Shown here: in pieces, positions 4,125 to 55,090 of the stretch
Numbering within the stretch: position 1 is the first letter of the stretch
Layout: every line of letters begins with the position of its first letter
Assembly: GCF_000142905.1 (NCBI RefSeq)
Contig: NW_013657644.1
Location: 1,163-65,162, forward strand
Direction: 5' to 3'
Origin: Thecamonas trahens ATCC 50062
Lineage: Eukaryota > Protista > Apusomonadida
DNA length: 64,000 nt
The notes under the pieces: model-generated
What the model was told of the DNA's origin: nothing
The model's database searches: none
The model's input: only the letters and a program-made list of their open reading frames with translations
Made by a program: the position numbers and the translations under genes

Positions 4125-6332
4125 ATGGCCACGGCCACCCTGTACCCCCCGTTCAAGTCGCTCTCTGCTGCTCTCCGCCACGTCGCAAGCACACCCTCTG
4201 CCCTTGCCGACTGGCATGCCCACGCCTCGGCCGCCCCGCCCTCCTCGCTGCCCTCGCCGCTGTGGGATGAAGGCAAACTAGTTTTTGTGTCTGCTCTCGC
4301 CACTGCCACTGCCGCCGCTGACCCTGCCGCTGCGCTTGCTGTCCTCAAGCTTTTGCTGCAGCTCGACGCCGATCCCCTCGACCCGAACATGGACTTACCG
4401 GGCTTTATTGCTTCGCTTGATCCCTCGCACTCGCCCTCCACTCCTCCAGAGCTCGCTCAGTGGCCGCCTTCGCTCCTTGCCCTCGTCGCAAGTCGCGTCA
4501 GCCCGGCTCTCGTGCCGCTTGTCAGGGCTCTGCTAGACGCCGGCGCCAGCCCGGACGGCGCTATCACCGTCTACCCCGACGACGACGGCCCGCCTGCACC
4601 GTCACTTCCCAACGCGCCAACACCCCTCATGTTTGCGCTGAGCGCAGCTCCAAGCCCCGGCTGGGACCAGGTACGTCCCTCCCCCTCCCCCTCCCCCTTC
4701 CCTCCCCTCCCCCTTCCCTCCCCTCCCCCATCCCTTCACCAGAGAGAATGACGACACCTTTGTCAATCCATTCTATGAGCAGAGTGCCTCTCCGCGGCAC
4801 CCGCTGCCAATGCGACGGCGTGTTCACGTGCAATGTCGCAATCTTCGGATCGCGCGCACGGGCCGGCGGCCCACCTGCGTTTTGCAGGTTGGGTCGCCGT
4901 GCTCTCGCGTCGCCGCGGCTTCGGGCGCGCCCAGTACCGCGCCGGGCCCTGGGCAACCTCCACGGCGGACGTACATTAGATTGACAACGCGTCTGAGGCC
5001 TGCTGACAAAATGGCCGCAGCCGTCCGGCCGGTTCAAGTCTCTTTGGCTGCCATGGCCCTTGTGTGTTGGGCTCTCGGGCACGTAGGTGCATAGCGCCGT
5101 CTACAAGTTGGGTTGGGCTGGTGCCAGCCGTCGCTCTGCGGCGGCTCGGATGGTCCTCCTTCTCTTGTACACGGCACTGTCGCCCTGCTGCCCGCCGCCT
5201 GGCCGGTGATGGCTGCCACAGATCTTGACCCGGCCCCCAGTGCGACTGTGGCTGTCGGCAGTGCCGAGCTGCGTCTCTTCATAGCGTCCGTCCGAGGCGC
5301 GCCCTTGGTCATTTCTGCAGACGATCATAATCGACCCTCTGACTCTCTGTCTTCTATTGCCTCGTGCGCCTCCCCTTTCTCTCTCTCTCTCTCTCTTCTA
5401 CTCACCCGTGATGGCTGTTTTAGACTGCCCGTCTCCTCCTTGCACGTGGCGCTTCGCCGTCTCGGTCGTTTCGGTCCATTACTGCGCTGCACATGCTCAT
5501 CGAGCGCTGGGCGCCGTCTGTACTGCCTGCGACCGACGACGCTGATGCCGACGACCTTTTGGACAACGATAGCGCTCATGCATACCCGGCTCCGTCGTCC
5601 ATTCCTCCCTTTGCTGACCTCGCCGCCGAGCTCCTCGCCGCCGACCGCAATCGTACCTTTACTGCAGACTCTCGCGGTCACCTTGCCTACCATCGCGCGC
5701 TGACCTGCCTCCCAGCACATGACATCGAATCGCTCTTTGCTCCCCTCGTCGGTGAGTGGACCATGGTACGTGGCAAGGTTAGCGACCCGCAGCCGTTTGT
5801 CCTCACTTCCCCCACTCTCGATGGCCAGTCGCCGGTTGTCCTCCTTGCCGGCCGGCCGCCTGAGCTCTGCGGAGACCAGCTTCAGATCCTGCTCGATCCT
5901 TCCGGTCCTTTTAACCTCGCCTCGTGCGCAACACCGGAAGCTCTTGTTGCTGCTGTCTCGACCTCGCGTCTTGACCTTGTCGAGCTTCTCCTAGCTCACG
6001 CACCTACGTGCGCATGTCGTGCTAGCCCTGACGCCGCACCGTACATTCTTGCTCGCGCCGTCGCCGCTCGCTCGCTCCTCGCGCACGCCGACGATGATGC
6101 AGCCGGCATCGTCGCTGCTCTCGAGACCCACTGCTCGTCATCTGCGTGCCCCTTGCGCGGCCAGCTCTCGGCCGCCTATGCATGCGGCGGCTGCGGCGCC
6201 GTCTTTTACTGCTCGGAGCACTGTCAACGCTCCGACTTTGACGACGGCCATGCCGTTGCATGCAGCAAGCTAGCTGCCGCCATGGCCGCCTCCCGCGCCG
6301 AGGCCACGCCTGCATCCTGCACCCTCCAGTGA
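4125..6332 (+). CDS. Ankyrin-repeat + MYND zinc finger protein; exons 4125-4670 and 5424-6332
   Basis: The GTACGT...TAG intron 4671-5423 joins in phase to give TPLMFAL...GWDQ|TARLLLARGASP...TALHML (ankyrin). C-terminal CGGCGAVFYCSEHCQRSDFDDGHAVAC is a MYND finger. Confidence 0.85.
4740..5349 (+). ncRNA. Large (~610 nt) intronic box C/D RNA of unknown family
   Basis: Terminal stem CAGAGAG (4740-4746)/CTCTCTG (5343-5349), box C ATGACGA (4748-4754) and box D CTGA (5339-5342) in exact K-turn register. Extensive internal helices and two cUUCGg loops. Ends 74 nt upstream of the 3' splice site. Confidence 0.78.
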
Positions 6333-6361
6333 ACACACACACCTCCTTTGCTGCCACCTGC

Positions 6362-7420
6362 TCACCGCTTGAAAAATGACAACACAGCCGACGCCGAGTT
6401 GACCGAGCTGTAGCCCATGTCCCCGCTGCGGAATGCCGCCACCCGCTTGGCCGCCATCTTCTTACCGAGCGTAAAGAGCAGCGTCGGCGCGTACTGCGCC
6501 ACGTAGGTAAAGAGCAGCACAGGGTGCTGGGAAATCCAGGACTCGTGAATGCGCGCGCCAAGGGCTGCCGCATACAGCTCAGCACATCGTCGGGTCGACA
6601 TCTTGTGTGCTTTCATCGGCTCGGCTGCGGCCTCACCCACCCGCCCACCGACCTCGGCCGTGAACGCGTTGGCTGCGCCCTCGGACACAACCGGGCCTGG
6701 ACACACAATACAAGTGTCGATGCCGCGCTCGCCTACCTCGGCTCCCAACGAGCCCATCCACCCGTTGAGGGCGTGCTTGGTCATGGCATACGAGCCGGAC
6801 ACCGGCGTCGGAAGCTTGCCGGCCACCGATGAAGTCACCGCCACCAGTCCGTCACCAGCCTCCAGCATCGACGGAAGCACGGCTTTGGTCACCGAAATGG
6901 TCCCCAGCACATTGACCTTGAACATGGCCTCGTCAATCTCGACGGGTGTCTCCTCCACCAGCGCCCGCTGCGACCGTCCGGCGTTGTTGACCAGGATTTC
7001 AATACGACCACCGAGCGCGGCGGCCGCCGTCGCCGCCGCCGTCTCGTGCGAGCTAGTCTCCAGCAAGTCGAGCGGGACAGCGACCATTCGTCCCGGAAGA
7101 TGCACCGCCTCGGCAGCAAGCTCCTGTAGCTTCTTCTCTGATCGCGCCGAAATCGCTACATCAGCTCCATGCTCTGCGAGCACAATCGCCAGCTCGCGAC
7201 CGATGCCCGACGAGGCACCCGTCAGCCACACCCGCTTGCCAGCCACCGCCGCGCGCAGCCCAGCGCCCGAGTCGGCCGCCACCAGCCGGCCCCATGCCGA
7301 GAGCGTCGCCAAGTCACAGTCAGCTCGCACAAGCCGCACAGCTTGCCACACTAGCCAGGCCGTGACTGCCACAGCAAGTATCCCAGGCGCCCAGCACCAA
7401 GCGGAGCAGCTGGGCCACAT
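6362..7420 (-). CDS. DHRS7-like short-chain dehydrogenase/reductase with N-terminal membrane anchor
   Basis: VWLTGASSGIG, NNAGRSQR, YAMTK (YxxxK), CPGPV motifs. First plausible ATG at 7420 precedes a hydrophobic segment and RADCDL. Confidence 0.88.
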   Translation of the reverse strand: MWPSCSAWCWAPGILAVAVTAWLVWQAVRLVRADCDLATLSAWGRLVAADSGAGLRAAVAGKRVWLTGASSGIGRELAIVLAEHGADVAISARSEKKLQELAAEAVHLPGRMVAVPLDLLETSSHETAAATAAAALGGRIEILVNNAGRSQRALVEETPVEIDEAMFKVNVLGTISVTKAVLPSMLEAGDGLVAVTSSVAGKLPTPVSGSYAMTKHALNGWMGSLGAEVGERGIDTCIVCPGPVVSEGAANAFTAEVGGRVGEAAAEPMKAHKMSTRRCAELYAAALGARIHESWISQHPVLLFTYVAQYAPTLLFTLGKKMAAKRVAAFRSGDMGYSSVNSASAVLSFFKR

Positions 7421-7463
7421 GTCGTCGGCGAGTCGAGTCGTGCCGCCCGACCGTGCAACGTGT

Positions 7464-9925
7464 TTACAGCTCGCCGCTACCATCATACGTTTCGCCCGTG
7501 CCCAGCTCGCCATGGTCGCTCGGGTCAGCAGCATCGCCACTTACCTCGGTGCGCTCGTCAGAGCTCTGGATAAGCATGTCGTCGGCAATGACAGCGTCAG
7601 GCAGCCCGTCGTCCGCATCGGCGCTGTCGCTGGCATGTGAGCCCGCTTCGGAATCGGAGATGAGCCGCTCGTGCCCGGTTCGCGAAACAGGAGCCCCAAC
7701 GAGCGACAAGAGGCCCAACACCTTTGCACGACGGTAGACCCAAGCGCCGCCGATGGCGAGAGTGATGACAGCGATGCCGAGAACAATGAAGAGTGGCGCC
7801 CGCGATGCGCCCGGGCTGCCAGAAATTTCGTTTCCACACCACTTGCGAGACGGCGCAAACGGGTCGTCGGCGCCATCGATGCACGAGTCCCCGGCCACCC
7901 GACGGTACCCGCGGGTGATGCGGTAGTAGCCGTCAGCCGGACACTCACCCCGTTCTGTGTCGTCCGGAGCGTCTTTGCCAGACTTGAGCACGCACGCCGC
8001 GTCGGGATCGTCCTGGCTCTCGCGGACATACCCGACGTCGCACTCCCAGTCGGCTGCTGTACACATGCAGTGGTCTGCATCGGGACCGTCGTGACTCTCC
8101 AGCGGGACGCACAACGCGTCGGGCTTGCGCCGCCGATACGTGTTCTCACGCCCAAGCACGCATCCATAGCCAGGGCTCCAGCTCTCGTACTGCGAGGGGA
8201 TACAGACCGGCGGGAGTGACGGCGGCACTACGTCGACGCGGACGAGGCCGACCCCACCAAACGACTCGGTCTCGAGCATCCAGCTGTAGCGTGTTGAGCT
8301 CGCAGACTTGTCGTCGATGACCGAAACGTCGGTGACACCTACAACACGAACGTTCGAGCCGTCGTCACTGAGCGCGACGGCAGAGAACGCAGCGCCGGTA
8401 ACATGGCGCACGCCGACAAATTGGGTCTGCTCACGCGGGACACGTAGGACGGCACCGCCGTCGCGGGCCATCCAGAATCCGACGTCTTCGTTGCCGCTGA
8501 GCAGCTCCCAGCTAGCTCCAGCGTCGGATGAGAACGCTGCTGCGCCTTCGGCGCCATCCAGAGCACCGGCGGCATACACGATACCGGGCGCGGACAAGGC
8601 GTAAGCCAGGCAGCCGCGAGCACCCAGATCAATCGCAAACGGACACCCCCCGCGCCAACAAGAGCACACGGCAGCGGTGCGTCGTGCGCATCGCGCTGGG
8701 GACCCGTCAGCGGCTGCCAGCTCCCGCCGGCATCGGTCGAAACAAGGGTGGTGATCACCAGCGGTGCGTTGGCTCCAGCAAACGGATTGTCGACAACGTT
8801 GGCGGCAAGCACGCCCTCTACTGATGCGAGCGGGCCAAACGCTGGCCCAATGTCGTTCTCGTGGACGTGCTCAAGCATGAGCGCAAACGAAACGCCATCG
8901 GCGCTTGAGGTGTACAGGTGGCCCCACGATGCGTGCTCCGCGATGTGAAGGACAACAGCGTCAGTACCGTCGTCGAGGAACTGATGCGCACGCTCCTCGA
9001 GCGTGAGTGAGTTGGGAAGCTTGACTCGGTTGAACTCCTTGCCGTCGGACGAGACAGTGAGATGGACGGCAGCACCATCGTCCTCGAGCGTCTCGACATA
9101 AACAAATGAGGGTGCCACTAGCTCAAAAGCGGCACCGCCACGGACTTCGCCAATGATCGGAACAGCGAGAATGCTGGTCGGAGCCTCGTCAATCCGGGCT
9201 GCGCGTCCGGCGTTGAGCACACCGAAGAACATGTCGAGCGAGTAGTCAACGTCGAGCTGCGAGTCTTCCGAGGCGCGAGCAGACCACTTGACGACAAGTA
9301 CAGCATCATCGCTGACCGCTGATACCTTGAGCTGAGCAGCCCAGCCGTGCTGGACAACATAGTCTGCGATGAGCGACCACGACGCGCCGTAGTCCTTGGT
9401 CATGCCGAGGACGCGGAAGCAGCGGAAGCGCGGCTTGTCGAGGCAGCCGTCCGAGGCAAACCGCGCCAGCCACCAGCCGTTCTGGTGCGGATGGAAGGAA
9501 ACCAGGTCCGATGCCCGTGCCACCGGGACTCGCGCCACGTCCACCGCCAGCGGCGTTGACATCGGTTGCCAGCTGGCGCCGCCGTCCTTGGACACAAAGT
9601 GGACCTTGCCCATTCCGCCCCCGACCGCCACCACCACATCACCGTGGGAATAGACCTCCGCCACCAGCGAGTCCTCTGCTCCAGACGGAAGCTTAACCTC
9701 AACCGGCGCCTCGCCCATGCCTCCGGACCGCATCACCCGGCCATCAGCAAGCACAGCGAGGAACCAGCCTCCCGGGCCGGAAGCGGTGTCGACGACCTGT
9801 GACGGGACGTGGGCAATGGTTGCCTCGGCCGCTGACACCGCCAGCGGTACGTGGAGGGAGGTAAGCGCAACGAGTGTGACGAGGAGCCAAACACGGGGCA
9901 CGTGGGGGTGGCTGAGCGTGTGCAT
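7464..9925 (-). CDS. VPS10: VPS10/sortilin-family sorting receptor (frameshift at 8646-8651)
   Basis: Signal peptide, Asp-box repeats (SKDGGASW, TKDYGASW, STDAGGSW), 10CC module (GCVLGRENTYRRRKP...CTAADWECDVGY...GYRRVAGDSC), TM helix and acidic tail. One extra G in the G6 run joins the two ORFs. Confidence 0.88.
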
Positions 9926-10034
9926 GGCCTCGAGAGAGCTATACGTTGGTATCGCTCGTCGGTCCGGACCGAAAAGGCAACAAGACGCCACGTGACTGGT
10001 CGGCGGCGGCTGGTATCGTGTACATGCTGATGAT

Positions 10035-10548
10035 TTACGCCTCCTCCCAAACATACTCGTAGGTGACTTCCTTCGAGACGGCGACAGACTTGTTCTTCTT
10101 GCCCCTCTTGGACTTCTTGCCCTTGATGACCTCTTCCTCGTAGACGTACTCGTATTCGACAACCGCCGACTTGCCCCCGACAGGCACGTCCTCGTAGACG
10201 TACTCGTAGTCGCCAGCTGCGCTACGCCCGCCCATGCCGAGACTCTTGGCAGGGACATGCTCGTAAACATACTCGTACTCTACGGTGGCGGCGGCACCAT
10301 GTCGGCGGCCCCTGCCGCGTCCGCGTGTCGACGACTGGGTGACATCGTAGTCCTCCGAAGACTTACTCGCCTCCGAGGACGACGAGACTCCAGGCCCATC
10401 TGCAGCTGCAGCCGAAGCCGAAGCCCTCAACGGCACCGGCGACGACGACGATGAGGACGACGACGTTGATAACGAAGCCACAGATGACGTTGATGACGAA
10501 GCCACAGACGACGACGATGACGACATCTCATCCGACGACGACGACGAC

Positions 10549-10594
<46 letters not shown>

Positions 10595-13191
10595 ACGACG
10601 ACGCCGAGTTCGACACAGACGATGCGAAAGAGGCTGATGACGACAGTGCCTCGGTCGCCGTCGACGACGCCGACGTTGCGGACGTGTCCGATCCCGAGCT
10701 GCTGGTGCTTGACGAGGTCTTGGCGCTACGGGCGGAAGGCGACGAACGCTTCGACCGCAAACTGGTCTCACCGCGCGACGACGAGGTGGCCTTGGCCATG
10801 GCCGACTGTCCTTTGCGCGCATGCTTGGCCTGCTTCTTTTGGAGCGCGCGTTGTTCTGAGGCGACCTCCTTGGCAACGCTGGTGCGTTCCCGCATTGACT
10901 TGGAGGCCTTCTTGGAATACTTGGCGGCAGCATCCTTGTCACCCGCCATGTGCGCCGCGTGTGCCTTGCGCTGCGCGTCGGCGGTCTTGGCATCGAGCTG
11001 GGCCATCTTGTTGAAAAGCTTAGCTTGCTTGACCTGCGAGGCTGCCACCGCCTTGCGGTGATCAGCGGAAGCAGTGACGCTGGCTATGGCGTTAGCGTCG
11101 AGCGCTGGCGCAGCCGATGGGCGCGGGCCGGACCAGGAGTTGTAGCCGGCTGGTGGGCGAGCCCTGCGGCTGTTGACCGGCATCGAGAGCGAGTTGAATC
11201 CGGCGGGTGCCATCGATTGCGGCGGCGGCGAGCGCGTGGGAGGCGTGGCCCCTCCAGGTGCCCGCGGCAGAGACCCGAACCCGGTGCCCGAATGAGACGA
11301 GACGTTGCCGCCCGCACTCGCAGCGGAGCTCACGGCCATACCGCCTCCAGCCGCGGGGCCTGTGTTTGCACCTTGCCCTGACTCTGCCGTCGTGTTGACG
11401 CTCAATCGATTGTCATTGCCAGCTCCCATCGCGGTCGACCTCGCTTTGGTGCTTGTACCCAGGCTCGACGCCGCTGCTCCAACGCTGCGGGCGTCAGCAC
11501 CTTGCCGCGACACAGTAGCCGCTGGCATCGTTGGCATGTGGTACCTCACGCCTGTGCTCGATCCCTTTCGCGCTCCAGGTGCACCTTCCCCGGCGTGGCC
11601 ATACTGTCCCGGGTTGCAGCGCCAGTGCTGGAGACTGCAGTTGAGGTCGCGGCCCTGTGTCCAGCCGGTTCCGTCGCAAGCGCAGCACTTGGTGCTGCCG
11701 AGCTAGATGCCACTCTTGCCCTGGAGCTTGGCGTCGCACTTGCCGATCCCATGTGCGAGCCAGACCACACACCGGCTGCTGGACCAGACATTCCATGCCC
11801 GCTCACACCACCAGTGCCCGACATCGCGCTCACGGGACCGCCCTGTCCACCTGACGCGACTCTGGCACCAGCACCGGGAGCCACAGACACAGTCTGCACC
11901 CCGGCTCCAGATCCATACATCGCACTTGCTGATCCCATGTGCGAGCCAGACCAAACACCGGCTGCTGGACCAGACACCGCATATCTCGGCCTGTATCCGC
12001 CATCCCAGGGTGCAAATGTATACCCACCCATTCCGCCGGGGCCGGACATCAGGTACACGGGACCGCTGTTGCTACCAGGTACAACTCCAGCGTCAGTAGT
12101 CGATGTCGCCCCGCCATCATCTGGCTCCGCAGACGCAACCTGCACCCCGGCTCCAGAACCATACATCGCGCTTGCCGATCCCATGTGCGAGCCAGACCAC
12201 GCACCGGCTGCTGGACCAGACATTCCATGCCCGCTCACACCACCAGTGCCCGACATTGCGCTCACGGAACCGCCCTGTCCACCTGATGCGACCCCGGCAC
12301 CAGCACCGGGAGCCACAGACACAGTCTGCACCCCGGCTCCAGATCCATACATCGCACTTGCCGATCCCATGTGCGAGCCAGACCACGCACCGGCTGCTGG
12401 ACCAGGCATTCCATGCCCGCTCACACCACCAGTGCTCGACATCACCCACACAGGACCGCTGTCTCCGCCAGGCGCGACTCCGACTCCAGCGCTAATAATC
12501 GCCACCGCCGCACTCTGGTCGACTGCAGCATCCGTCACATTGACCGCACTATCATCCACTTTGCCAGGGCCGGTAGTCATCGCATACCACGATGGGACAA
12601 GTTGGACTGGCGTTGCGGCCGGAGCCAGCGGCCAAGCGCGACCGCTAACGTTGACACCGCTACTGGCGCCGAGTACACCCCCGAGCGCGCCGCCGAACCG
12701 CACCACCACCTTCACGTGCCGCACATATTGCGGGCTACAGCGCTTGCGAGCGATGACAATGTTAGACACTGGTACCGCAAACGGCAGTGTCATGCACGTC
12801 GACGAGTACAGCGCCCAGGTTGACCACTTGCGGAACAAATCCTCCGCGAGAGCCACGAACCGACCGCAGCCCACAGGAAGACAACGCCCGCAAGGTGAAA
12901 GTCAAGGACGCCCGGATGGACGCCAAAGCCCACTCCCTGCAGCATGTCCACCAGTGCCTGCCGCGTCAACCCGCGTCCCAGCACCTTGCGCTCGCTGCCC
13001 ATGCTGCGGGTCAGGCGCTCGAAATGTTCGTTAGCCACCTGAGCCAACGGCTGAATAGCCTCTTCCTCCCTGCCGGCCAATCCACTGACTACATCCGCAC
13101 GACCACTGTCTGCAGCACATGAAACAACTTCAACGTTCTCCTTTTCGCTTGCAACTGCAACGCCTGTCTTGCTCATTGCTGCACTTGCCAT
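10035..13191 (-). CDS. Large low-complexity Gly/Ser-repeat protein with C-terminal YEYVYE motifs (two inferred -1 frameshifts, ~12877 and 11588-11591)
   Basis: Three successive minus-strand ORFs, each offset by -1, join into a continuous protein starting at ATG 13191. Confidence 0.5.
11736..12440. repeat. Coding tandem repeat, about 4 copies with periods 186/246/186 bp
   Basis: Anchor GATCCCATGTGCGAGCCAGACC at 11745, 11931, 12177 and 12363. Confidence 0.92.
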
Positions 13192-23100: not shown

Positions 23101-25856
23101 CGACGTGACCTCCAGCGGGCCAGCCGGCGACGGCGGCCGCTGCGCCCGCTCCAGCTCGCTCCGCTCCAGCCCGCCCAGCGCGGACATGTCGAGGAGGAGC
23201 GCCCGTGTCCGTCCGGTCGCCGCAAGCACGTACGCGTGGCCCGGGTGCGCCGACGGCTCCACGCCTGCGGGCAAAATGAGGAACGACGAGACCGCAGACG
23301 GGAGTGGCGCCACCGTGCCGCGAGCAAGGAGGCTGCTCGCCGACGCCATCGCGGCCGACGAAGCACCTGAGACAACCGGCGACGTCGCCACTGTCAACGG
23401 CGTGCCCATCCCCGACGTGAGGCCTGTAGCACCGGAGCCTGGGGAGTTGCTCGGCCCGCTTGCAGAAGCAGCCTTGAGGTTGCGGATCTCGGCGAGCGAT
23501 GCCTCAGCGAGCACGTCGCGGAAGACAAGGCCGGTGGGAAAGGTGGCGTTGAGGAGGACGTGTTCTTGGAAGAGGAGCGCGAGCCGCGGCTCGACCGCTG
23601 CTGCCGCCGCTACGTCGTCGAGCGGCGCGCCGAGGACAGTGCCGTCAGGCGCCGTGGCCCGCGCGCCGGCAGTCCGCAGCCGCGTCGCCGCAAACAGCCG
23701 CGCCGGGTACACCACCGGCGAGCCGGAGAAGAGCTGGCGGAGAACCTCGAGCCGCACCTCGGGCTCGCGATCAGAGACGCACACAATGAGCAGCCGCTTG
23801 AGGATGCGGTGCACAAACTGCGGCGAGGTGGCCTGTGACGGCTGCGAGATGAGCTTGCAAATGGTGATCGCCGCCTGCTTGCGGATGACCGGCTCCGGAT
23901 CCTCGAGGTATGAAAAGACCACGCCCTCCAGAAAGTCGTGCAAAAAGTACGAGACAAAGTCAAACATGGAGAGTGTCTTGAGCGCGAGGACTTTGGCGGC
24001 CGTCGACGACTGCGACGCTGCAAGAATGCCCATAAACTGTGGCGAGTGCAAGAGCGGCTCGAGGTGCGAATGGGTGGCGACGTGCGCAGGAGTGCCCGGG
24101 TGTCGGAACGGCGCGCCGGCAAGAATGAGAGAGACGAGATCGAGAAGCTTGTAAAACGCCACGTCCGCCAGGTCCGGCAAGTCAGTCGCAATCGAGAGCA
24201 CCGTGTCGATGAGCTCCTCCGAGAGGCCAAGCCCAAAGAGAGCGTCAAGGTTCGGCGTAAGCGCTTCGAGGAACGACGGGCCGAGCGCAGTCGCCAGTCG
24301 CGCCACCGTCGTCAACGCCTGGAGGCAGACTGACGACGCCCGCTTCTTGAGAGTCAGCGCCGTCTTGCACCAGCCCATGATGTCCTTGAGGTACGGCGTG
24401 ATGTGGTGCTGGACCGCAAGCGCAAGGTCGCCGAGCGCGAGGAGCGTAACCGAGCGGAGGAGCGACGACTTGTCGCGCTCGCGCTTGAGGATTGAGAGCG
24501 AGGACTTGACCACCTTTTTGAGGTGGAGCGAGACAAAGGTGGCCACGTCGAGCGCGGCAAGGAGTGGGCTCAGCCGCAGCGCGCACATCCGCGTGTCGAC
24601 AAGCCGCGCATCGCGGAGGCCCACAACCGCCTGAGTCAGCGACTCGGTGTGGGTCACAAACCGCGAGCCAGTCAGCAACACAATGTGCGACATAGTCATG
24701 AGCGCGCCATGGACCGCCGACGGCGACTTGAGTACCGACGAGCTGACCGTCGGCCCACCCGAGCTCGACGCGCCTGCAGGAGGCGCCGGCGAGTTTGGTC
24801 GGGTCAGGCCCGTCGGCGTGTCGGCAATGATGATGGTCGACGGGCCGAGGACCGCAGAGACGTGGGAGTAGTGCTCGAGCTCGTTTGAAAGCACCGCGAG
24901 CTTCTTCTTGGGAATGGCCGACGACGAAAAGATGAGCGTGTTGCGCGCCCGGGTAAAGGCCCGCCGCGCAAAGTTGGTCAGCCCGGCCGCAGACCGCGGC
25001 TGGAGCGCAAGGAGAATCGAGGCAAGGAGCTCTGCGGCAACTTCGCGGATGGCCATATCGTCGTCGATGATGCCCTCCCACACACAGTCAAAGAGATCAA
25101 GCGGGCGGAGTTCCTTGAAGAAGAGCGTGGTATACTTGAAGAACTGCGCAGGCGCGGCACGGACAAGCACCCGCAGCGTGAGCACCGCCGCCAGCCGGTG
25201 GCCGGCCACCCGCGAGACCATCAGCCACTCGAGCGCACGGTTGACCTCAAACTCGACAATGAGATCCGACTGTAGAATGGTGTTGGACCGGGCAACGAGC
25301 TTTCCGAGCGTTGCCGCCGCCGCCGCCATCACCTCGGGCGAAGAGCGGGGCATACAGTTCTTGAGCAAGTTGGCAAAGCGAGTGACCTTGAGCGCATTGT
25401 CGGCGACCTCGATTTCTAACAGTGCTGAAATAGCCAGCACGCCCCCGAGCTTGGACGCAGGCCTCAGTGCAGAACCAACCATCATACCATGGATGGCGGC
25501 GTAGACTGAGTTGAGAAAGTCGGTGAGCGACTCTCCCCGCTCACGCTTCAACGCCACATTCACAAACTCTCGCAGGCTACCTGCCGCCGCCTCGCGGACC
25601 CTTGGCGAGCTGTGCACATTCCACATGCTGCTTGGTTAGTCCCATTCCGCTGCCTTGTCCATCACCCACTCGGTTGGCTTCTGTGTGGCGAACATGCGAA
25701 ATTTGGTTGAAGGCGGTGCGCTGCGGGAGGGGGGGGGGAGGAGCTACCGACCCGGGTGGGAGGGGAGGGGGGGGGGGGGTTAGGGAGGGAGGGGGGAAGG
25801 GAGGAGGAGGGCATGGTAGCTTACGGGTCCTCGAGGTCGCGGAAGATTCCCTCCAT
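17149..25856 (-). CDS. TOR: Target of rapamycin kinase; exons 25856-25825 and 25609-17149
   Basis: HEAT repeats, FAT, FRB (ILWAELWFEGIDEASR), kinase (SKQRPR, LLKGHEDLRQD, DRHPSN) and FATC (GWCAPW). Intron GTAAGC...ACTAAC...CACAG (25824-25610) gives MEGIFRDLEDP|SPRVREAAA. Confidence 0.96.
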
Positions 25857-30262: not shown

Positions 30263-30622
30263 TCATGGGGGCGTCGGCCCGTAGACGGCGTCGCGTTGTG
30301 CAAACTGAAAGTAGCCCTCGGTCGATGCGGCATCAAGAGCCTCTCTCAGGCCTGGCGTCGAGTCGATCCGCATGGGCTGAACCTTGAGCGGAGAGCCAGC
30401 AAAGAACAGGCCGTCATAGACGCGGATGGCGTAGACAATGGCAGCAGGGCCGTCTTCAGTAGCAAAGGTGACAAAGGCGTAGCTCGCGCCGGCCGGCCGG
30501 TGGACCGAGGCAATGGGCGCGGACTGGGCAAAGAGCTCTGTGAGCAGCTCAGGTGTGGCCTCGTCAGTGAGATTGCCCACGTATACGCTTGCAAACGGAT
30601 CAATAGAGGACCTTGACCCCAT
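30263..30622 (-). CDS. RRM protein (RBM7/SF3B4-like RRM); may extend to 30142 via an indel
   Basis: RNP2 VYVGNL, ELLTELF, RNP1 SYAFVTF, GSPLKVQ. Confidence 0.75.
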   Translation of the reverse strand: MGSRSSIDPFASVYVGNLTDEATPELLTELFAQSAPIASVHRPAGASYAFVTFATEDGPAAIVYAIRVYDGLFFAGSPLKVQPMRIDSTPGLREALDAASTEGYFQFAQRDAVYGPTPP

Positions 30623-30799
30623 GTCGTGTCTCGTGAGTCGTGTGTTATGTTCGTGGCGGACCGAGCGGGGAGGAGAGGCGGAGAAGAGGGATGGAGCGCA
30701 GATCGTCGAAATCGTTCATATGGCAGAGACACCACGAGTCCAGGCTGCATGAGTCTGGGGGACTGGATGGAGCTGACTGTTCTGATCAGGCGGATATCC

Positions 30800-31180
30800 C
30801 CCCCGATCTACCCGCCTCTCAAATCCCTCACTACCGCAAGGATCTGCCCGCTTTCCCCCCCCATCTGCCCGCCTCTCAATCCTCACTACCGCACCCACTC
30901 NNNNNNNNNNNNNNNNNNNNNNNNNNNNNNNNNNNNNNNNNNNNNNNNNNNNNNNNNNNNNNNNNNNNNNNNNNNNNNNNNNNNNNNNNNNNNNNNNNNN
31001 NNNNNNNNNNNNNNNNNNNNNNNNNNNNNNNNNNNNNNNNNNNNNNNNNNNNNNNNNNNNNNNNTTCCCGCCTCTCAAATCCCTCACTACCGCAATGATC
31101 TGCCCCCCCCCCCTCCCCATCTGCCCGCCTCTCAAATCCCTCACTACCGCAATGATCTGCCCGCTTCCCCCCGATCTGAT
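30800..31180. repeat. ~55-60 bp minisatellite spanning an N gap
   Basis: Unit core CCCGCCTCTCAAATCCCTCACTACCGCAA(T/G)GATCTGCCC seen about twice on each side of the gap. Confidence 0.85.
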
Positions 31181-52266: not shown

Positions 52267-52410
52267 CACCGACTCTGGCCATTGCAAGCCGCTAAACGAC
52301 GGAACGCCATCATCGCCCATCGCCCGCCTCGGCCCGTCGCCCCGCGACGGCAGCGCAGGCGCTACTGCAGTTGCTGCCACTTCTCGCAGACAACCGCCAT
52401 CACGCCGCAA

Positions 52411-53739
52411 ATGAGACATGTGATTGGATGCGCACTTGCGACGGTGCTTGTAGTCTTTGGACTGTATGTGTGGGCGTATGCAGTGGTGGTGGTCCGCTTC
52501 GAGCCGGCGGTCGGTGAGTGGAGTTTGGCAAGTCCGCCAGATGCGTTGCTTGGCAACCGAGAGGGCCGAGGCGGGCCGTACGGCTGGCGGCTCATCCGGC
52601 GTGTGGCACGATCATCCGCCATTGCTGCTGGTCATGATCGAGTGTTCATGGCATCGATCGACGCTGCGGGCATTGCCGAAATCCGGGTCGAGGCTAAGCC
52701 TGAGGCAGAGGCTGCCAAGGAGATCCTGCCCGAGCTGGATGCGGCGGATGACGGCGCGGCGGCAACGTGGCTCCTGCATGATGACGCTGGATGGTCGGAT
52801 CGGCGGTTTGTGGCTAACACTGAGCCGCAGAGCTTGGTCTGGCTCGGCGAGTCCCGCATCACCGCGTTGGAGGCCATGGGCGATGGCCGGATGTGGGCGG
52901 TGCGCAAGGCTGCGGTCGCGGTCAGCCTCCTCCACACCCGGGCCATCAGGCCGGGTCAGGCGGTGCCGGCCTCATCGGCAGTGATCGATGTACATGCTGC
53001 ACTGGCGGCGCCAGTGGCACTGACCTACGTCCGTGCCTACGGCAAGTACCCGGCCGAGCTGTATGTGGTGGATGCGTCGTGGAAGTACCGCCCGCGCAAC
53101 ATTGATGACGCGCGGGTGCCTGAAGAGCTGGAAATGCGCGGTCACGGGCGGGTGCTGGCGTACGATCCCCAGCAGCGTGTCTCGCGGTGGGCTATCGCCC
53201 GCGAGCTCTACTTTCCGCTGGGAGTGGCGGCGGCGGACGATGGCGCGTATGTGCTGGTGACTGAGGCCACCAAGGCGCGAATCAAGGTCATCGATCGGAG
53301 CGATGACGAGCGGTGGTCTGTCTTTGTGGACGGGCTGCCGTGCGAGCCCGGGGCGATTTCGCCTGCGCCGCCCGCTGCCGATGGCTCTCCGCAATGGTAC
53401 GTCGGGTGCGTCGGCGTCCGCGGCGGATGGCTGTCGCGGACGCTGGCAACATCGAGACTGGCCAAGTACCTGGCGCTGGCGGTACCGACGACGATGCTGG
53501 ATGCCGCCCGCGAGTGGGTGGACGGTTTCCGGGCTGCGCGTTTTCTCGTGGTGCGGATTGCAGACAAGTCGCAAGGCCGCATCCGAGGCGCTGTGGTCGA
53601 GGTTCACTCGGTGCCGGCAGAAGCCGGTCTGGACTCAGTCGGGCAGGTCGTGGCCTCGCCGCATCGACGCGATCGGGTGTTTGTGCGATGCGCGCGGACG
53701 CTGCGTGTGGCTGAGCTCGGTCGCCACGAGCGCGGCTGA
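52411..53739 (+). CDS. Strictosidine synthase-like/APMAP beta-propeller membrane protein
   Basis: N-terminal signal-anchor; LYVVDASWKY, GRVLAYDP, LYFPLGVA...YVLVTE, FVDGLP. Confidence 0.72.
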   Translation: MRHVIGCALATVLVVFGLYVWAYAVVVVRFEPAVGEWSLASPPDALLGNREGRGGPYGWRLIRRVARSSAIAAGHDRVFMASIDAAGIAEIRVEAKPEAEAAKEILPELDAADDGAAATWLLHDDAGWSDRRFVANTEPQSLVWLGESRITALEAMGDGRMWAVRKAAVAVSLLHTRAIRPGQAVPASSAVIDVHAALAAPVALTYVRAYGKYPAELYVVDASWKYRPRNIDDARVPEELEMRGHGRVLAYDPQQRVSRWAIARELYFPLGVAAADDGAYVLVTEATKARIKVIDRSDDERWSVFVDGLPCEPGAISPAPPAADGSPQWYVGCVGVRGGWLSRTLATSRLAKYLALAVPTTMLDAAREWVDGFRAARFLVVRIADKSQGRIRGAVVEVHSVPAEAGLDSVGQVVASPHRRDRVFVRCARTLRVAELGRHERG

Positions 53740-53754
53740 GGGGAGGGAGAGAGT

Positions 53755-55090
53755 TTACGGCTCCGAGTCGATGCCTGTAGCAGCAAGGATGCGGCGGGCT
53801 CCGGCGAGGACGGAGAGAGTACCGGCTTCGACGCCTGCTTCGGCGGTGGCGACGGCAGCAGCGTCGCGTTTTGCAGCGCGGAGCAGCTCGTCCTGGACGA
53901 CAGCCCAGAGAGCAGCCTTTCGTTGGCGGGCGCGGCTGGCGAGCAGGTCGCCCGATGCAATGCGGGCGTCGAAGAACGACCCGATGTCGGTCCAGAGGCG
54001 GTCGAGGCCGCGGCCTTCTGTGGAAGAGATGGTGCGGACGGGCGGAGCCCAGTCTGGGTACTTGCGGTGCATGAGCTTGAGGGCGGAGCGGTACTCTGCC
54101 CGGACGATGTTTGCGGAGGAAGAGAGGTCGCCATCAGCCTTGGTGACGACGACCTCGTCGGCAAGCTCCATGACGCCACGCTTGATGCCCTGCAGCTCGT
54201 CGCCGGCACCGGGCGAGACGAGGAGCATGAACATGTCGACTACGTCTGCGACGGCGTACTCGGACTGGCCGACGCCGACAGTCTCGACGAGGATGACGTC
54301 AAACCCTGCGGCGTCGCAGACGGCGATAGCGTCCGAAGTGTGGCGGGCGACGCCACCGAGCGTCCCGGAAGATGGGGTGGTGCGAATGTAAGCCTTGGGC
54401 TCGCGGGCAAGCTCCATCATGCGGGTGCGGTCGCCGAGGATGGAACCGCCGGTCCGTGCCGACGACGGATCGATAGCGAGGACGGCGAGCGAGAGGCCTG
54501 AGCGGATGAGCCACATGCCAAAGGCTTCGATAAAGGTCGACTTGCCTACACCCGGCGCGCCCGAGATGCCGAGACGGATTGAGGGCCGGCCCGAGGCCCG
54601 CGGATTAGGCGCCGCCTCGAGACGGGCAAGCAGCTCCTGGGCCTTGACCTGGTGGTCAGGGCGGGAAGACTCAACTGCGGGCAACGGTAGGACGGATGTG
54701 AGAGAGAGACAACCAAGTTGTCGCACTGACGACCGCGATGAGGGTCACTACCAGCACCACCCTTGATCATCGCCAGCATCATCGACATCGGCATCATCAT
54801 CGACATCATCATCAGCAGCATCATTGCCAACACCGCCATCACCATCCCCCCTCCCCCTCCCCCCCATCGGACGTACTCACAGTAACAGCTCGCGAGAGCG
54901 AAAGACGATGTCCAGCAGCGACGCCTTTGGCAAGGGCATCGACATCGATGGCTGTGCGGCGGCGGGCAGGGGCGGGCGCTGACGAGGTGGCGGAGGCTGG
55001 CGCTGACGAGGTGGCTGAGGAGGAGAGGAGAAGGGCGTGGTGGACGATGGAGGAGAGTGGGTGGTGGCGGAGGCGGCACAGACGGAGCAT
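53755..55090 (-). CDS. MMAA: Methylmalonyl-CoA mutase GTPase chaperone MeaB/MMAA; exons 55090-54877 and 54674-53755
   Basis: LSRAVTV|IESS, GISGAPGVGKST, AIDPSS, GGSILGDRTRM, VETVGVGQSE, GDELQGIKRG, TKADG. Confidence 0.95.

Follow-up and report, generated by a model that had tools for sequence, protein, structure and literature searches.

Box C/D RNPs are thought of as small guide particles. The long RNAs known to use the C/D pathway either carry two snoRNAs, as in sno-lncRNAs (cited in PMC8162545) and tandem scaRNAs, or are telomerase RNAs of kinetoplastids, which carry a box C/D biogenesis domain (PMC4993307). Here we describe an intron of an ankyrin-MYND gene of Thecamonas trahens ATCC 50062, a member of the Apusomonadida, a sister lineage of animals plus fungi. 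RNA-seq contigs suggest that this intron yields a stable RNA of about 600 nt, the predicted ends of which form a box C/D kink-turn. The RNA is several times longer than ordinary C/D snoRNAs and has no known family and no recognisable target in the rDNA examined. Positions refer to the window, the whole stretch of 64,000 nucleotides (64 kb) that was analysed.

A box C/D motif in the intron of AMSG_07397

The region 4671-5423 (+) is exactly the intron (753 nt, GT..AG, phase 0) of the annotated gene AMSG_07397. Exon 1 (4125-4670) gives residues 1-182 and exon 2 (5424-6329) gives residues 183-484 of the annotated 484-aa protein with 100% identity, and a stop lies in frame inside the intron. The motifs described in an earlier note on this sequence are all present. 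CAGAGAG (4740-4746) and CUCUCUG (5343-5349) form a terminal stem of 7 Watson-Crick pairs, the 5’ half of which has a pair probability of 0.99 in the constrained fold. Box C (AUGACGA, 4748-4754) and box D (CUGA, 5339-5342) sit in exact kink-turn register with the bulge AAU (4747-4749), followed by G.A, A.G, C.U, G-C and A-U. Box C fits 6 of 7 positions of the RUGAUGA consensus; the one departure is a C instead of U, giving a C.U pair in place of U.U. A motif in exact register with a stem of at least 7 bp occurred in 0.0001 of 20,000 dinucleotide shuffles of the intron (0.00125 for a stem of at least 5 bp), and in 128 kb, representing both strands of the window, it is the only one with more than 5 bp. 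With tens of thousands of introns in a genome, however, a few chance C/D-like termini are expected, so the cap alone does not prove a function.

The end of the stem lies 74 nt before the 3’ splice site. A candidate branch site, UACUCAC (5399-5405), places its A at 5404, 19 nt before the 3’ splice site and 55 nt after the predicted end of the RNA. We infer that this spacing matches that described for intronic C/D snoRNAs, for which an optimum of ~50 nt is quoted (PMC8162545).

The earlier note also proposed an internal D’/C’ K-loop at 4993-5007, which our data do not support. The only other CUGAs in the region, at 4993 and 5003, are both paired in the best model, C4993 reads U in RNA contigs, and the only C-like motif, GUGAUGG at 5207, lies far from them inside a predicted rod-like arm. 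To look for a guide function, we scanned exhaustively for stretches of at least 11 bp (Watson-Crick plus G.U) against 9.1 kb of rDNA and computed RNAduplex pairings of the single-stranded segments. Compared with shuffled controls, no rRNA or spacer duplex was better than chance in these searches, which did not include snRNAs. The predicted single-stranded segment at 4755-4778, a candidate antisense element, paired with rRNA no better than shuffled segments did, and the 11-bp match of 4759-4769 to 18S 1237-1247 has no D’ box at the required spacing.

RNA-seq coverage and predicted structure

To determine whether a discrete RNA accumulates from the intron, we examined RNA-seq contigs from three independent studies, each represented by one run (X1, X5 and X14). 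X5 covered 4744-4971, with the contig starting 3 nt earlier, and 5040-5339; X1 covered 4769-5336, followed directly by Illumina adapter; and X14 covered 4773-5239. The rest of the intron was uncovered in all three runs, although unique 31-mers extend well beyond both contig ends. X1 showed only one exon piece, and X5 and X14 showed no exon coverage at all, which together with the uncovered intron flanks rules out DNA carry-over and intron retention. In addition, 19 RNA runs from 9 studies hold a share of the 2401-nt query that fits about 600 nt. The earlier note had predicted a discrete RNA with ends near 4743/5345, and at contig level this prediction came out positive. Contigs cannot give exact ends, strand or level, and none reaches the last bases of box D or the 3’ half of the stem, so the 3’ K-turn strand is not yet seen in RNA; 4741-5339 is the minimum extent of an RNA whose exact 3’ end is inferred. 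The case also shows that environmental metatranscriptomes can validate non-coding RNAs of rare protists.

Folding of 4740-5349 gave -309.5 kcal/mol, compared to -258.6 +/- 7.4 for shuffles (z -6.9), and after GC regression this was the strongest of 317 windows of 610 nt in the 64 kb. The predicted structure comprises a branched 5’ domain (4792-4918), including a 19-bp hairpin at 4860-4904 (pair probability 0.97; other helices 0.3-0.8), and a long irregular rod (4923-5304) with its tip at 5134/5138. The long arm (5014-5259), its apical hairpin and the 4860-4904 hairpin, all described in the earlier note, were reproduced with pair probabilities of 0.95-0.99. The core of the rod (4997-5265) is robust, whereas its basal extension (4923-4994/5267-5304) depends on the model. 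The closure of the first domain proposed in the earlier note (4760-4768/4979-4987) is a real complementarity, but a fold that enforces it is 5.4 kcal/mol worse than the alternative in which the rod extends to 4923/5304. The two folds are thus near-equal, and the secondary structure of a 600-nt RNA from energy alone is uncertain.

The z-score of the whole molecule was uninformative as to strand (-6.9 against -6.6 on the minus strand). The rod, in contrast, had z-scores of -5.8 to -7.3 and was 18-23 kcal/mol more stable on the + strand, and the arm has 11 G.U pairs on the + strand against 2 on the - strand. We rely on this comparison of + and - folds rather than on the count of G.U against A.C in the + strand MFE (22 against 2), which is biased because the fold was optimised on that strand. 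GC skew is about 0 inside 4750-5349 but -0.2 to -0.56 in the pyrimidine-rich intron flanks and exons, making the RNA a compositionally distinct block. The two differences seen in RNA contigs are structure-neutral: C4993U turns C-G5268 into U.G, and A5009U lies in a loop, leaving the fold essentially unchanged.

The region is not coding, with no Pfam match above cut-off, and Rfam searches gave only noise, both at gathering thresholds on the whole window and at E<=10 with permissive filters on 4600-5500. The sequence is single-copy in the genome, with no paralogue of either end and nothing in viral contigs. Homologues were sought through translations of the region in three frames, in a 5.8-billion-cluster search, in a HMMER search of 1.84 billion representatives, and in JGI metagenome contigs by peptide patterns and by an exact 28-mer; none was found by these routes, so no covariation test was possible. 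The two exons were searched separately by reference. A search with the host protein, made to reach an orthologous intron, returned only the T. trahens protein itself.

Origin and nature of the RNA

Together, these data lead us to favor, with moderate confidence, a model in which the intron, after splicing of the AMSG_07397 pre-mRNA, is trimmed from both sides down to an RNA of about 600-610 nt (about 4741 to 5340-5349). As with ordinary intronic box C/D snoRNAs, the kink-turn is most likely bound by Snu13 and the Nop58/Nop56/fibrillarin set, which would block the exonucleases and let the RNA accumulate well above its host mRNA; snoRNP nucleation protects intronic C/D snoRNAs in this way (PMC8162545). 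The space between the boxes, which in a normal snoRNA holds about 50-100 nt with guide sequences, would be filled by about 580 nt of selected secondary structure. As no methylation-guide geometry or rRNA target is recognisable, we read it as an orphan, non-guide C/D-capped structural RNA, although a processing-type sno/scaRNA-like particle also remains among the readings offered by the earlier note. It is possible, though doubtful, that this is the first example of a distinct RNP design, in which a single box C/D snoRNP cap closes a long rod-shaped RNA, abundant enough to be assembled from sea-water metatranscriptomes, that acts as a scaffold or double-stranded-RNA platform, for instance in ribosome or snRNP biogenesis or as a decoy or substrate for dsRNA-binding proteins.

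The strongest alternative, which we consider unlikely, shares the same mechanism of accumulation but not the biological role: a chance C/D-like motif plus stem captures snoRNP proteins and stabilises the GC-rich core of a long intron, and the RNA has no function in trans. The absence of a C’/D’ pair, of guide geometry and of an rRNA target, the failure to find a homologue or paralogue, the lineage-specific host gene and a motif probability of 1e-4 per long intron, which allows a few chance cases per genome, are all consistent with this view. The maintenance of the rod on the + strand, the distinct composition of the block, its rank as the best-folding segment of the 64 kb and the preservation of the fold by both variants argue against it.

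Less likely still is an RNA that does not use C/D proteins, being either a decay-resistant core of the intron held by its own helices or a minus-strand RNA with its own promoter inside the intron. The contigs carry no strand information and stop 4-13 nt short of the predicted 3’ end, the whole-region z-scores of the two strands are similar, and domain 4755-4992 alone folds slightly better on the minus strand. However, contig ends coincide within a few nt with an improbable motif that exists only on the + strand, and the rod clearly favors that strand. X1 also reads the + strand into the read-2 adapter; read 2 is sense in the usual dUTP-stranded libraries, although the library type is not on record.

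A diverged member of a known large RNA class (U3 or another processing snoRNA, telomerase RNA with a C/D biogenesis domain, RNase P/MRP RNA, SRP RNA or a composite C/D-H/ACA scaRNA) is very unlikely. The RNA is large, C/D-ended and apparently abundant, three Rfam U3 models detected no U3 gene anywhere in the assembly, two short stretches (4765-4778 and 5308-5321) loosely resemble U3 box A by eye, and an ANANNA hinge-like motif (ACAAAA) lies at 5006-5011. Nevertheless, no Rfam model matched the region, the contigs start at 4741 and leave no 5’ domain upstream of box C, and complementarity to the 18S 5’ end or the ETS did not exceed chance. RNase P RNA and an MRP-like hit lie elsewhere, at C12:254430-254723 and C10:271928-272016, respectively. 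There is no ACA between 5260 and 5349 and no pseudouridylation pocket. Finally, although near-identical sequence appears in many marine metatranscriptomes and the molecule is rod-like and GC-rich, DNA contamination, an assembly artefact or a foreign or viroid-like replicon is largely refuted, as DNA contigs (X20) bridge from the intron interior across the 3’ splice site into exon 2 (4974-5461), coverage in the RNA runs stops at the RNA’s ends in stand-alone, linear contigs, the sequence is single-copy, nothing was found in viral or JGI metagenome contigs, T. trahens is itself marine, and an exon piece of the same gene is present in X1.

Comparison with known C/D-pathway RNAs

Like intronic box C/D snoRNAs, this RNA has box C near its 5’ end and, in the DNA sequence, box D near its predicted 3’ end and an adjoining terminal stem in K-turn register, it lies in a spliceosomal intron, and only the part bounded by the motif is seen to accumulate at contig level. 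It differs in being about 600 nt instead of roughly 60-150, in its non-consensus base in box C, and in lacking a C’/D’ pair, an antisense guide ending next to a D box and an rRNA target. Long tandem or composite scaRNAs of vertebrates, which probably include C/D-C/D forms of about 350-420 nt (SCARNA2, 9 and 17) and the C/D-H/ACA U85/SCARNA10 of about 330 nt, similarly enclose a large extra structured domain within C/D termini and in several cases are intron-derived. A run of three G.U wobble pairs (5067-5069/5200-5202) is reminiscent of the G.U/U.G wobble stem that acts as a Cajal-body signal. Those RNAs, however, contain a second complete C/D or H/ACA unit with recognisable guides, whereas here no second C box pairs with a D box and there is no ACA box, and this RNA is about 1.5-2 times longer.

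The sno-lncRNAs are also long, intron-derived RNAs whose ends are protected by snoRNP assembly, but they need two complete snoRNAs, one per end. Here, neither end has its own C+D pair with a stem, and one K-turn is formed by the two ends together, so that the sno-capped lncRNA suggested by the earlier note does not fit in its two-snoRNA form. Kinetoplastid telomerase RNA (PMC4993307) is likewise a long structured RNA that borrows the C/D pathway for stability. The telomerase-like reading of the earlier note is excluded, as the telomeres of this genome are TTAGGG and no 7- or 8-nt permutation of CCCTAA occurs in 4671-5423; the RNA is also intronic rather than trans-spliced. U3 snoRNA is an abundant, large RNA of the C/D class, but this RNA has no 5’ extension with boxes A’/A, no B/C motif, no hinge complementarity to the 5’ ETS above chance and no hit to any U3 model.

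A box C/D kink-turn register within a spliceosomal intron

Similarly to what the earlier note had described, the sequence contains CAGAGAG at 4740-4746, a three-base bulge AAU, AUGACGA at 4748-4754, and CUGA at 5339-5342, directly followed by CUCUCUG at 5343-5349. Together these form a 7-bp Watson-Crick stem and, next to it, G.A, A.G, C.U, G-C and A-U, which is the register of a box C/D kink-turn with one departure from the RUGAUGA consensus (C for U). The surrounding 753 nt (4671-5423) are a genuine spliceosomal intron. When the exons were searched separately, the only database relative of exon 2 was the annotated 484-aa protein AMSG_07397 of Thecamonas trahens ATCC 50062, whose residues 1-182 are exon 1 (4125-4670) and the remainder exon 2 (5424-6329), with the junction ...GWDQ|TARLLLA....

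To determine whether the motif was more than a chance arrangement, we searched for [R]UGANGA preceded by a one-base spacer and a stem, together with CUGA followed directly by the other half of the stem. A stem of at least 7 bp occurred in 0.0001 of 20,000 dinucleotide-preserving shuffles of the intron, and one of at least 5 bp in 0.00125. On both strands of the 64-kb window only three such motifs were found with box C and box D 40-800 nt apart, and this is the only one with more than 5 bp. The other two, at 24827-25513 (+) and about 30548-30886 (-), have only a 5-bp stem each (spacings 679 and 334 nt) and are probably due to chance.

Folding of 4740-5349 gave -309.5 kcal/mol compared to -258.6 +/- 7.4 for shuffles (z -6.9), and among 317 windows of 610 nt tiled over the 64 kb this segment has the largest excess stability after regression on GC content. 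The second most over-stable zone after GC correction, 52400-54200, overlaps long open frames (e.g., 52282-53739 + and 53303-54391 +) and is probably GC-rich coding sequence. GC skew is near zero inside 4750-5349 but -0.2 to -0.56 in the exons and in the pyrimidine-rich intron flanks, and the structured block is therefore a compositionally separate insert in an otherwise ordinary CT-rich intron. The intron parts outside the RNA, 4671-4740 and 5350-5423, are simple pyrimidine tracts (CCCT-type repeats upstream and CT repeats downstream), and without the RNA the intron would be about 144 nt.

RNA-seq contigs within the intron confined to its interior

A search of public sequencing runs identified 19 RNA libraries from 9 studies that contain 0.12-0.27 of the sampled words of a 2401-nt query spanning both exons and the intron, which is the share that a piece of about 600 nt would give. 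Contigs from four runs were then placed on the locus. In run X5, a marine metatranscriptome, contigs lie at 4744-4971 and 5040-5339; the first begins three letters earlier, at 4741, and the second ends at 5339. In run X1, from a second marine study, one 587-nt contig covers 4769-5336 and then runs into Illumina adapter, and in run X14, an rRNA-depleted transcriptome of 'organism A', one contig covers 4773-5239. Run X20, which probably represents the genome's own DNA reads, covers exon 1 and also runs from the intron interior across the 3' splice site into exon 2, at even depth.

The rest of the intron (4671-4740 and 5340-5423) was not covered in any of the three RNA runs. No exon was covered in X5 and X14 either, whereas X1 adds one exon piece, 5833-6053. 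DNA carry-over, intron retention and a stable lariat would all be expected to cover the intron flanks, which was not observed. The contig ends are also not de Bruijn-graph breaks at the flanking simple repeats, since by our reading unique 31-mers extend to about 4700 and about 5365, well beyond where the contigs stop. A discrete RNA of about 600 nt therefore accumulates, apparently above its host mRNA, although contigs alone do not establish abundance or exact ends. As judged from the contigs, its 5' end lies within a base or two of the start of the predicted stem. The 3' end is less certain. Contigs stop 4-13 nt before the predicted end, which is common for random-primed libraries; even so, box D and the 3' half of the stem have not yet been seen in RNA.

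The contigs of X1 and X14 both read C4993U and A5009U, whereas the assembly and the DNA contig of X20 read C and A, and the X5 contigs break exactly around these two sites. Strain alleles are the most likely explanation; if organism A is the sequenced strain, these would be RNA-DNA differences (editing or reverse-transcriptase signatures of base methylation).

Strand preference and predicted fold

Contigs do not reveal the strand, and the two strands have similar whole-molecule z-scores (-6.9 and -6.6). The long arm, however, does discriminate. Segment 5010-5262 folds to -140.7 kcal/mol with 11 G.U pairs on the + strand compared to -122.6 with 2 on the - strand, and 4955-5299 gives -185.0 (z -7.3) on the + strand compared to -161.5 (z -5.0) on the - strand. 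G.U pairs become A.C mismatches on the other strand, so this asymmetry is what selection on a + strand RNA would produce. The C/D motif also exists only on the + strand, which is the strand of the host gene.

To assess the architecture, the terminal stem was forced and the boxes were kept unpaired. The best predicted fold then has single-stranded segments next to the boxes (4755-4778 and 5319-5338), a helix 4779-4788/5307-5318, a branched 5' domain 4792-4918 with a 19-bp hairpin (4860-4904, pair probability 0.97), and a very long irregular rod from 4923/5304 to a tip at 5134/5138, with pair probabilities mostly 0.95-0.99. Within the rod, three consecutive G.U/U.G wobble pairs (5067-5069/5200-5202) lie next to a UGUGUGUUG tract. 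The long arm, its apical hairpin and the 4864-4899 hairpin proposed in the earlier note were reproduced. The closure of 'domain 1' by 4760-4768/4979-4987, which was also proposed there, is a real complementarity, but a fold that enforces it is 5.4 kcal/mol worse; the two architectures cannot be separated by energy alone, and only the core arm 4997-5265 is common to both.

In contrast, the internal D'/C' K-loop suggested in the note is not supported. The two CUGAs at 4993 and 5003 have no C' partner and are paired in the model, and C4993 reads U in the contigs of X1 and X14. That change converts C4993-G5268 into a U.G pair, while A5009U falls in a loop, and the variant sequence keeps essentially the same fold. 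Two of two observed changes are thus structure-neutral, which is weak but consistent evidence.

Possible function and relation to known RNAs

To look for complementarity to ribosomal RNA, the pre-rRNA of this genome (5' ETS, 18S, ITS, 5.8S, LSU and 3' flank) was built from contig C44 of the assembly, where the rDNA unit lies on the minus strand at 6027-12136 (18S 10307-12136, LSU 6027-9688). The longest low-wobble matches are 11-13 bp, about the number expected by chance for 610 x 9110 positions, and the best duplexes of the three single-stranded segments tested are no better than those of shuffled segments. In one case, 4759-4769, just after box C, pairs over 11 bp (one G.U) with 18S 1237-1247 (GGAUUGACAGA); however, no D' box follows at the spacing that guide function needs, and the same bases can pair inside the RNA. 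We therefore treat the RNA as an orphan.

The mechanism we favor, in which protein binding and trimming are inferred, is splicing-coupled assembly of the C/D core proteins on the K-turn formed by the two ends, followed by debranching and exonucleolytic trimming to that block, as for ordinary intronic C/D snoRNAs (PMC8162545), which would leave a stable particle whose body is a long double-helical scaffold. The positions fit this suggestion, as the RNA's predicted end is 74 nt from the 3' splice site and about 55 nt from the likely branch site UACUCAC (5399-5405), near the optimum quoted in that review. Alternatively, a chance cap may stabilize a functionless intron core. No homologue could be retrieved for a covariation test, and the host gene is lineage-specific, but the strand-specific maintenance of the rod and its distinct composition argue against this alternative, which we consider unlikely though not eliminated.

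Membership in a known class of large RNA was not supported. The region matches no Rfam family, even with permissive filters at E<=10. The RNA is not U3: it starts 7 nt before box C and so has no 5' domain, it matches no U3 model, and nothing in it pairs with the 18S 5' end or the 5' ETS above chance. Notably, no U3 was detected anywhere in the assembly with the Rfam models U3 (RF00012), ACEA_U3 (RF01848) or Fungi_U3 (RF01846) at E<=1, and U3 of this apusomonad must be divergent or missing from the assembly. It is also not telomerase RNA, as TTAGGG telomere arrays are present at contig ends of this genome (contigs C1 and C2) and the intron has no 7-nt permutation of the template. Nor is it RNase P or MRP RNA; the nuclear RNase P RNA scores above the Rfam cut-off (49.4 bits) at 254430-254723 of contig C12, and a partial RNase MRP-like match scores just below its cut-off (45.4 of 50 bits, model positions 22-101) at 271928-272016 of contig C10. 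A C/D-H/ACA composite does not fit, because an ANANNA-like ACAAAA sits at 5006-5011 but there is no ACA box after the second arm, and a two-snoRNA sno-lncRNA does not fit because neither end has its own C/D pair. The region is neither coding nor a repeat or mobile element.

In our reading, the RNA works like an intronic box C/D snoRNA at its ends, but as a member of that family it fails on size, on C'/D' and on guide elements. The nearest precedents are long tandem or composite scaRNAs, sno-lncRNAs, and the C/D-type telomerase RNAs of kinetoplastids (PMC4993307). It differs from the scaRNAs, from the sno-lncRNAs and from the kinetoplastid telomerase RNAs in having one K-turn that closes the whole 600-nt molecule, with no second functional unit.
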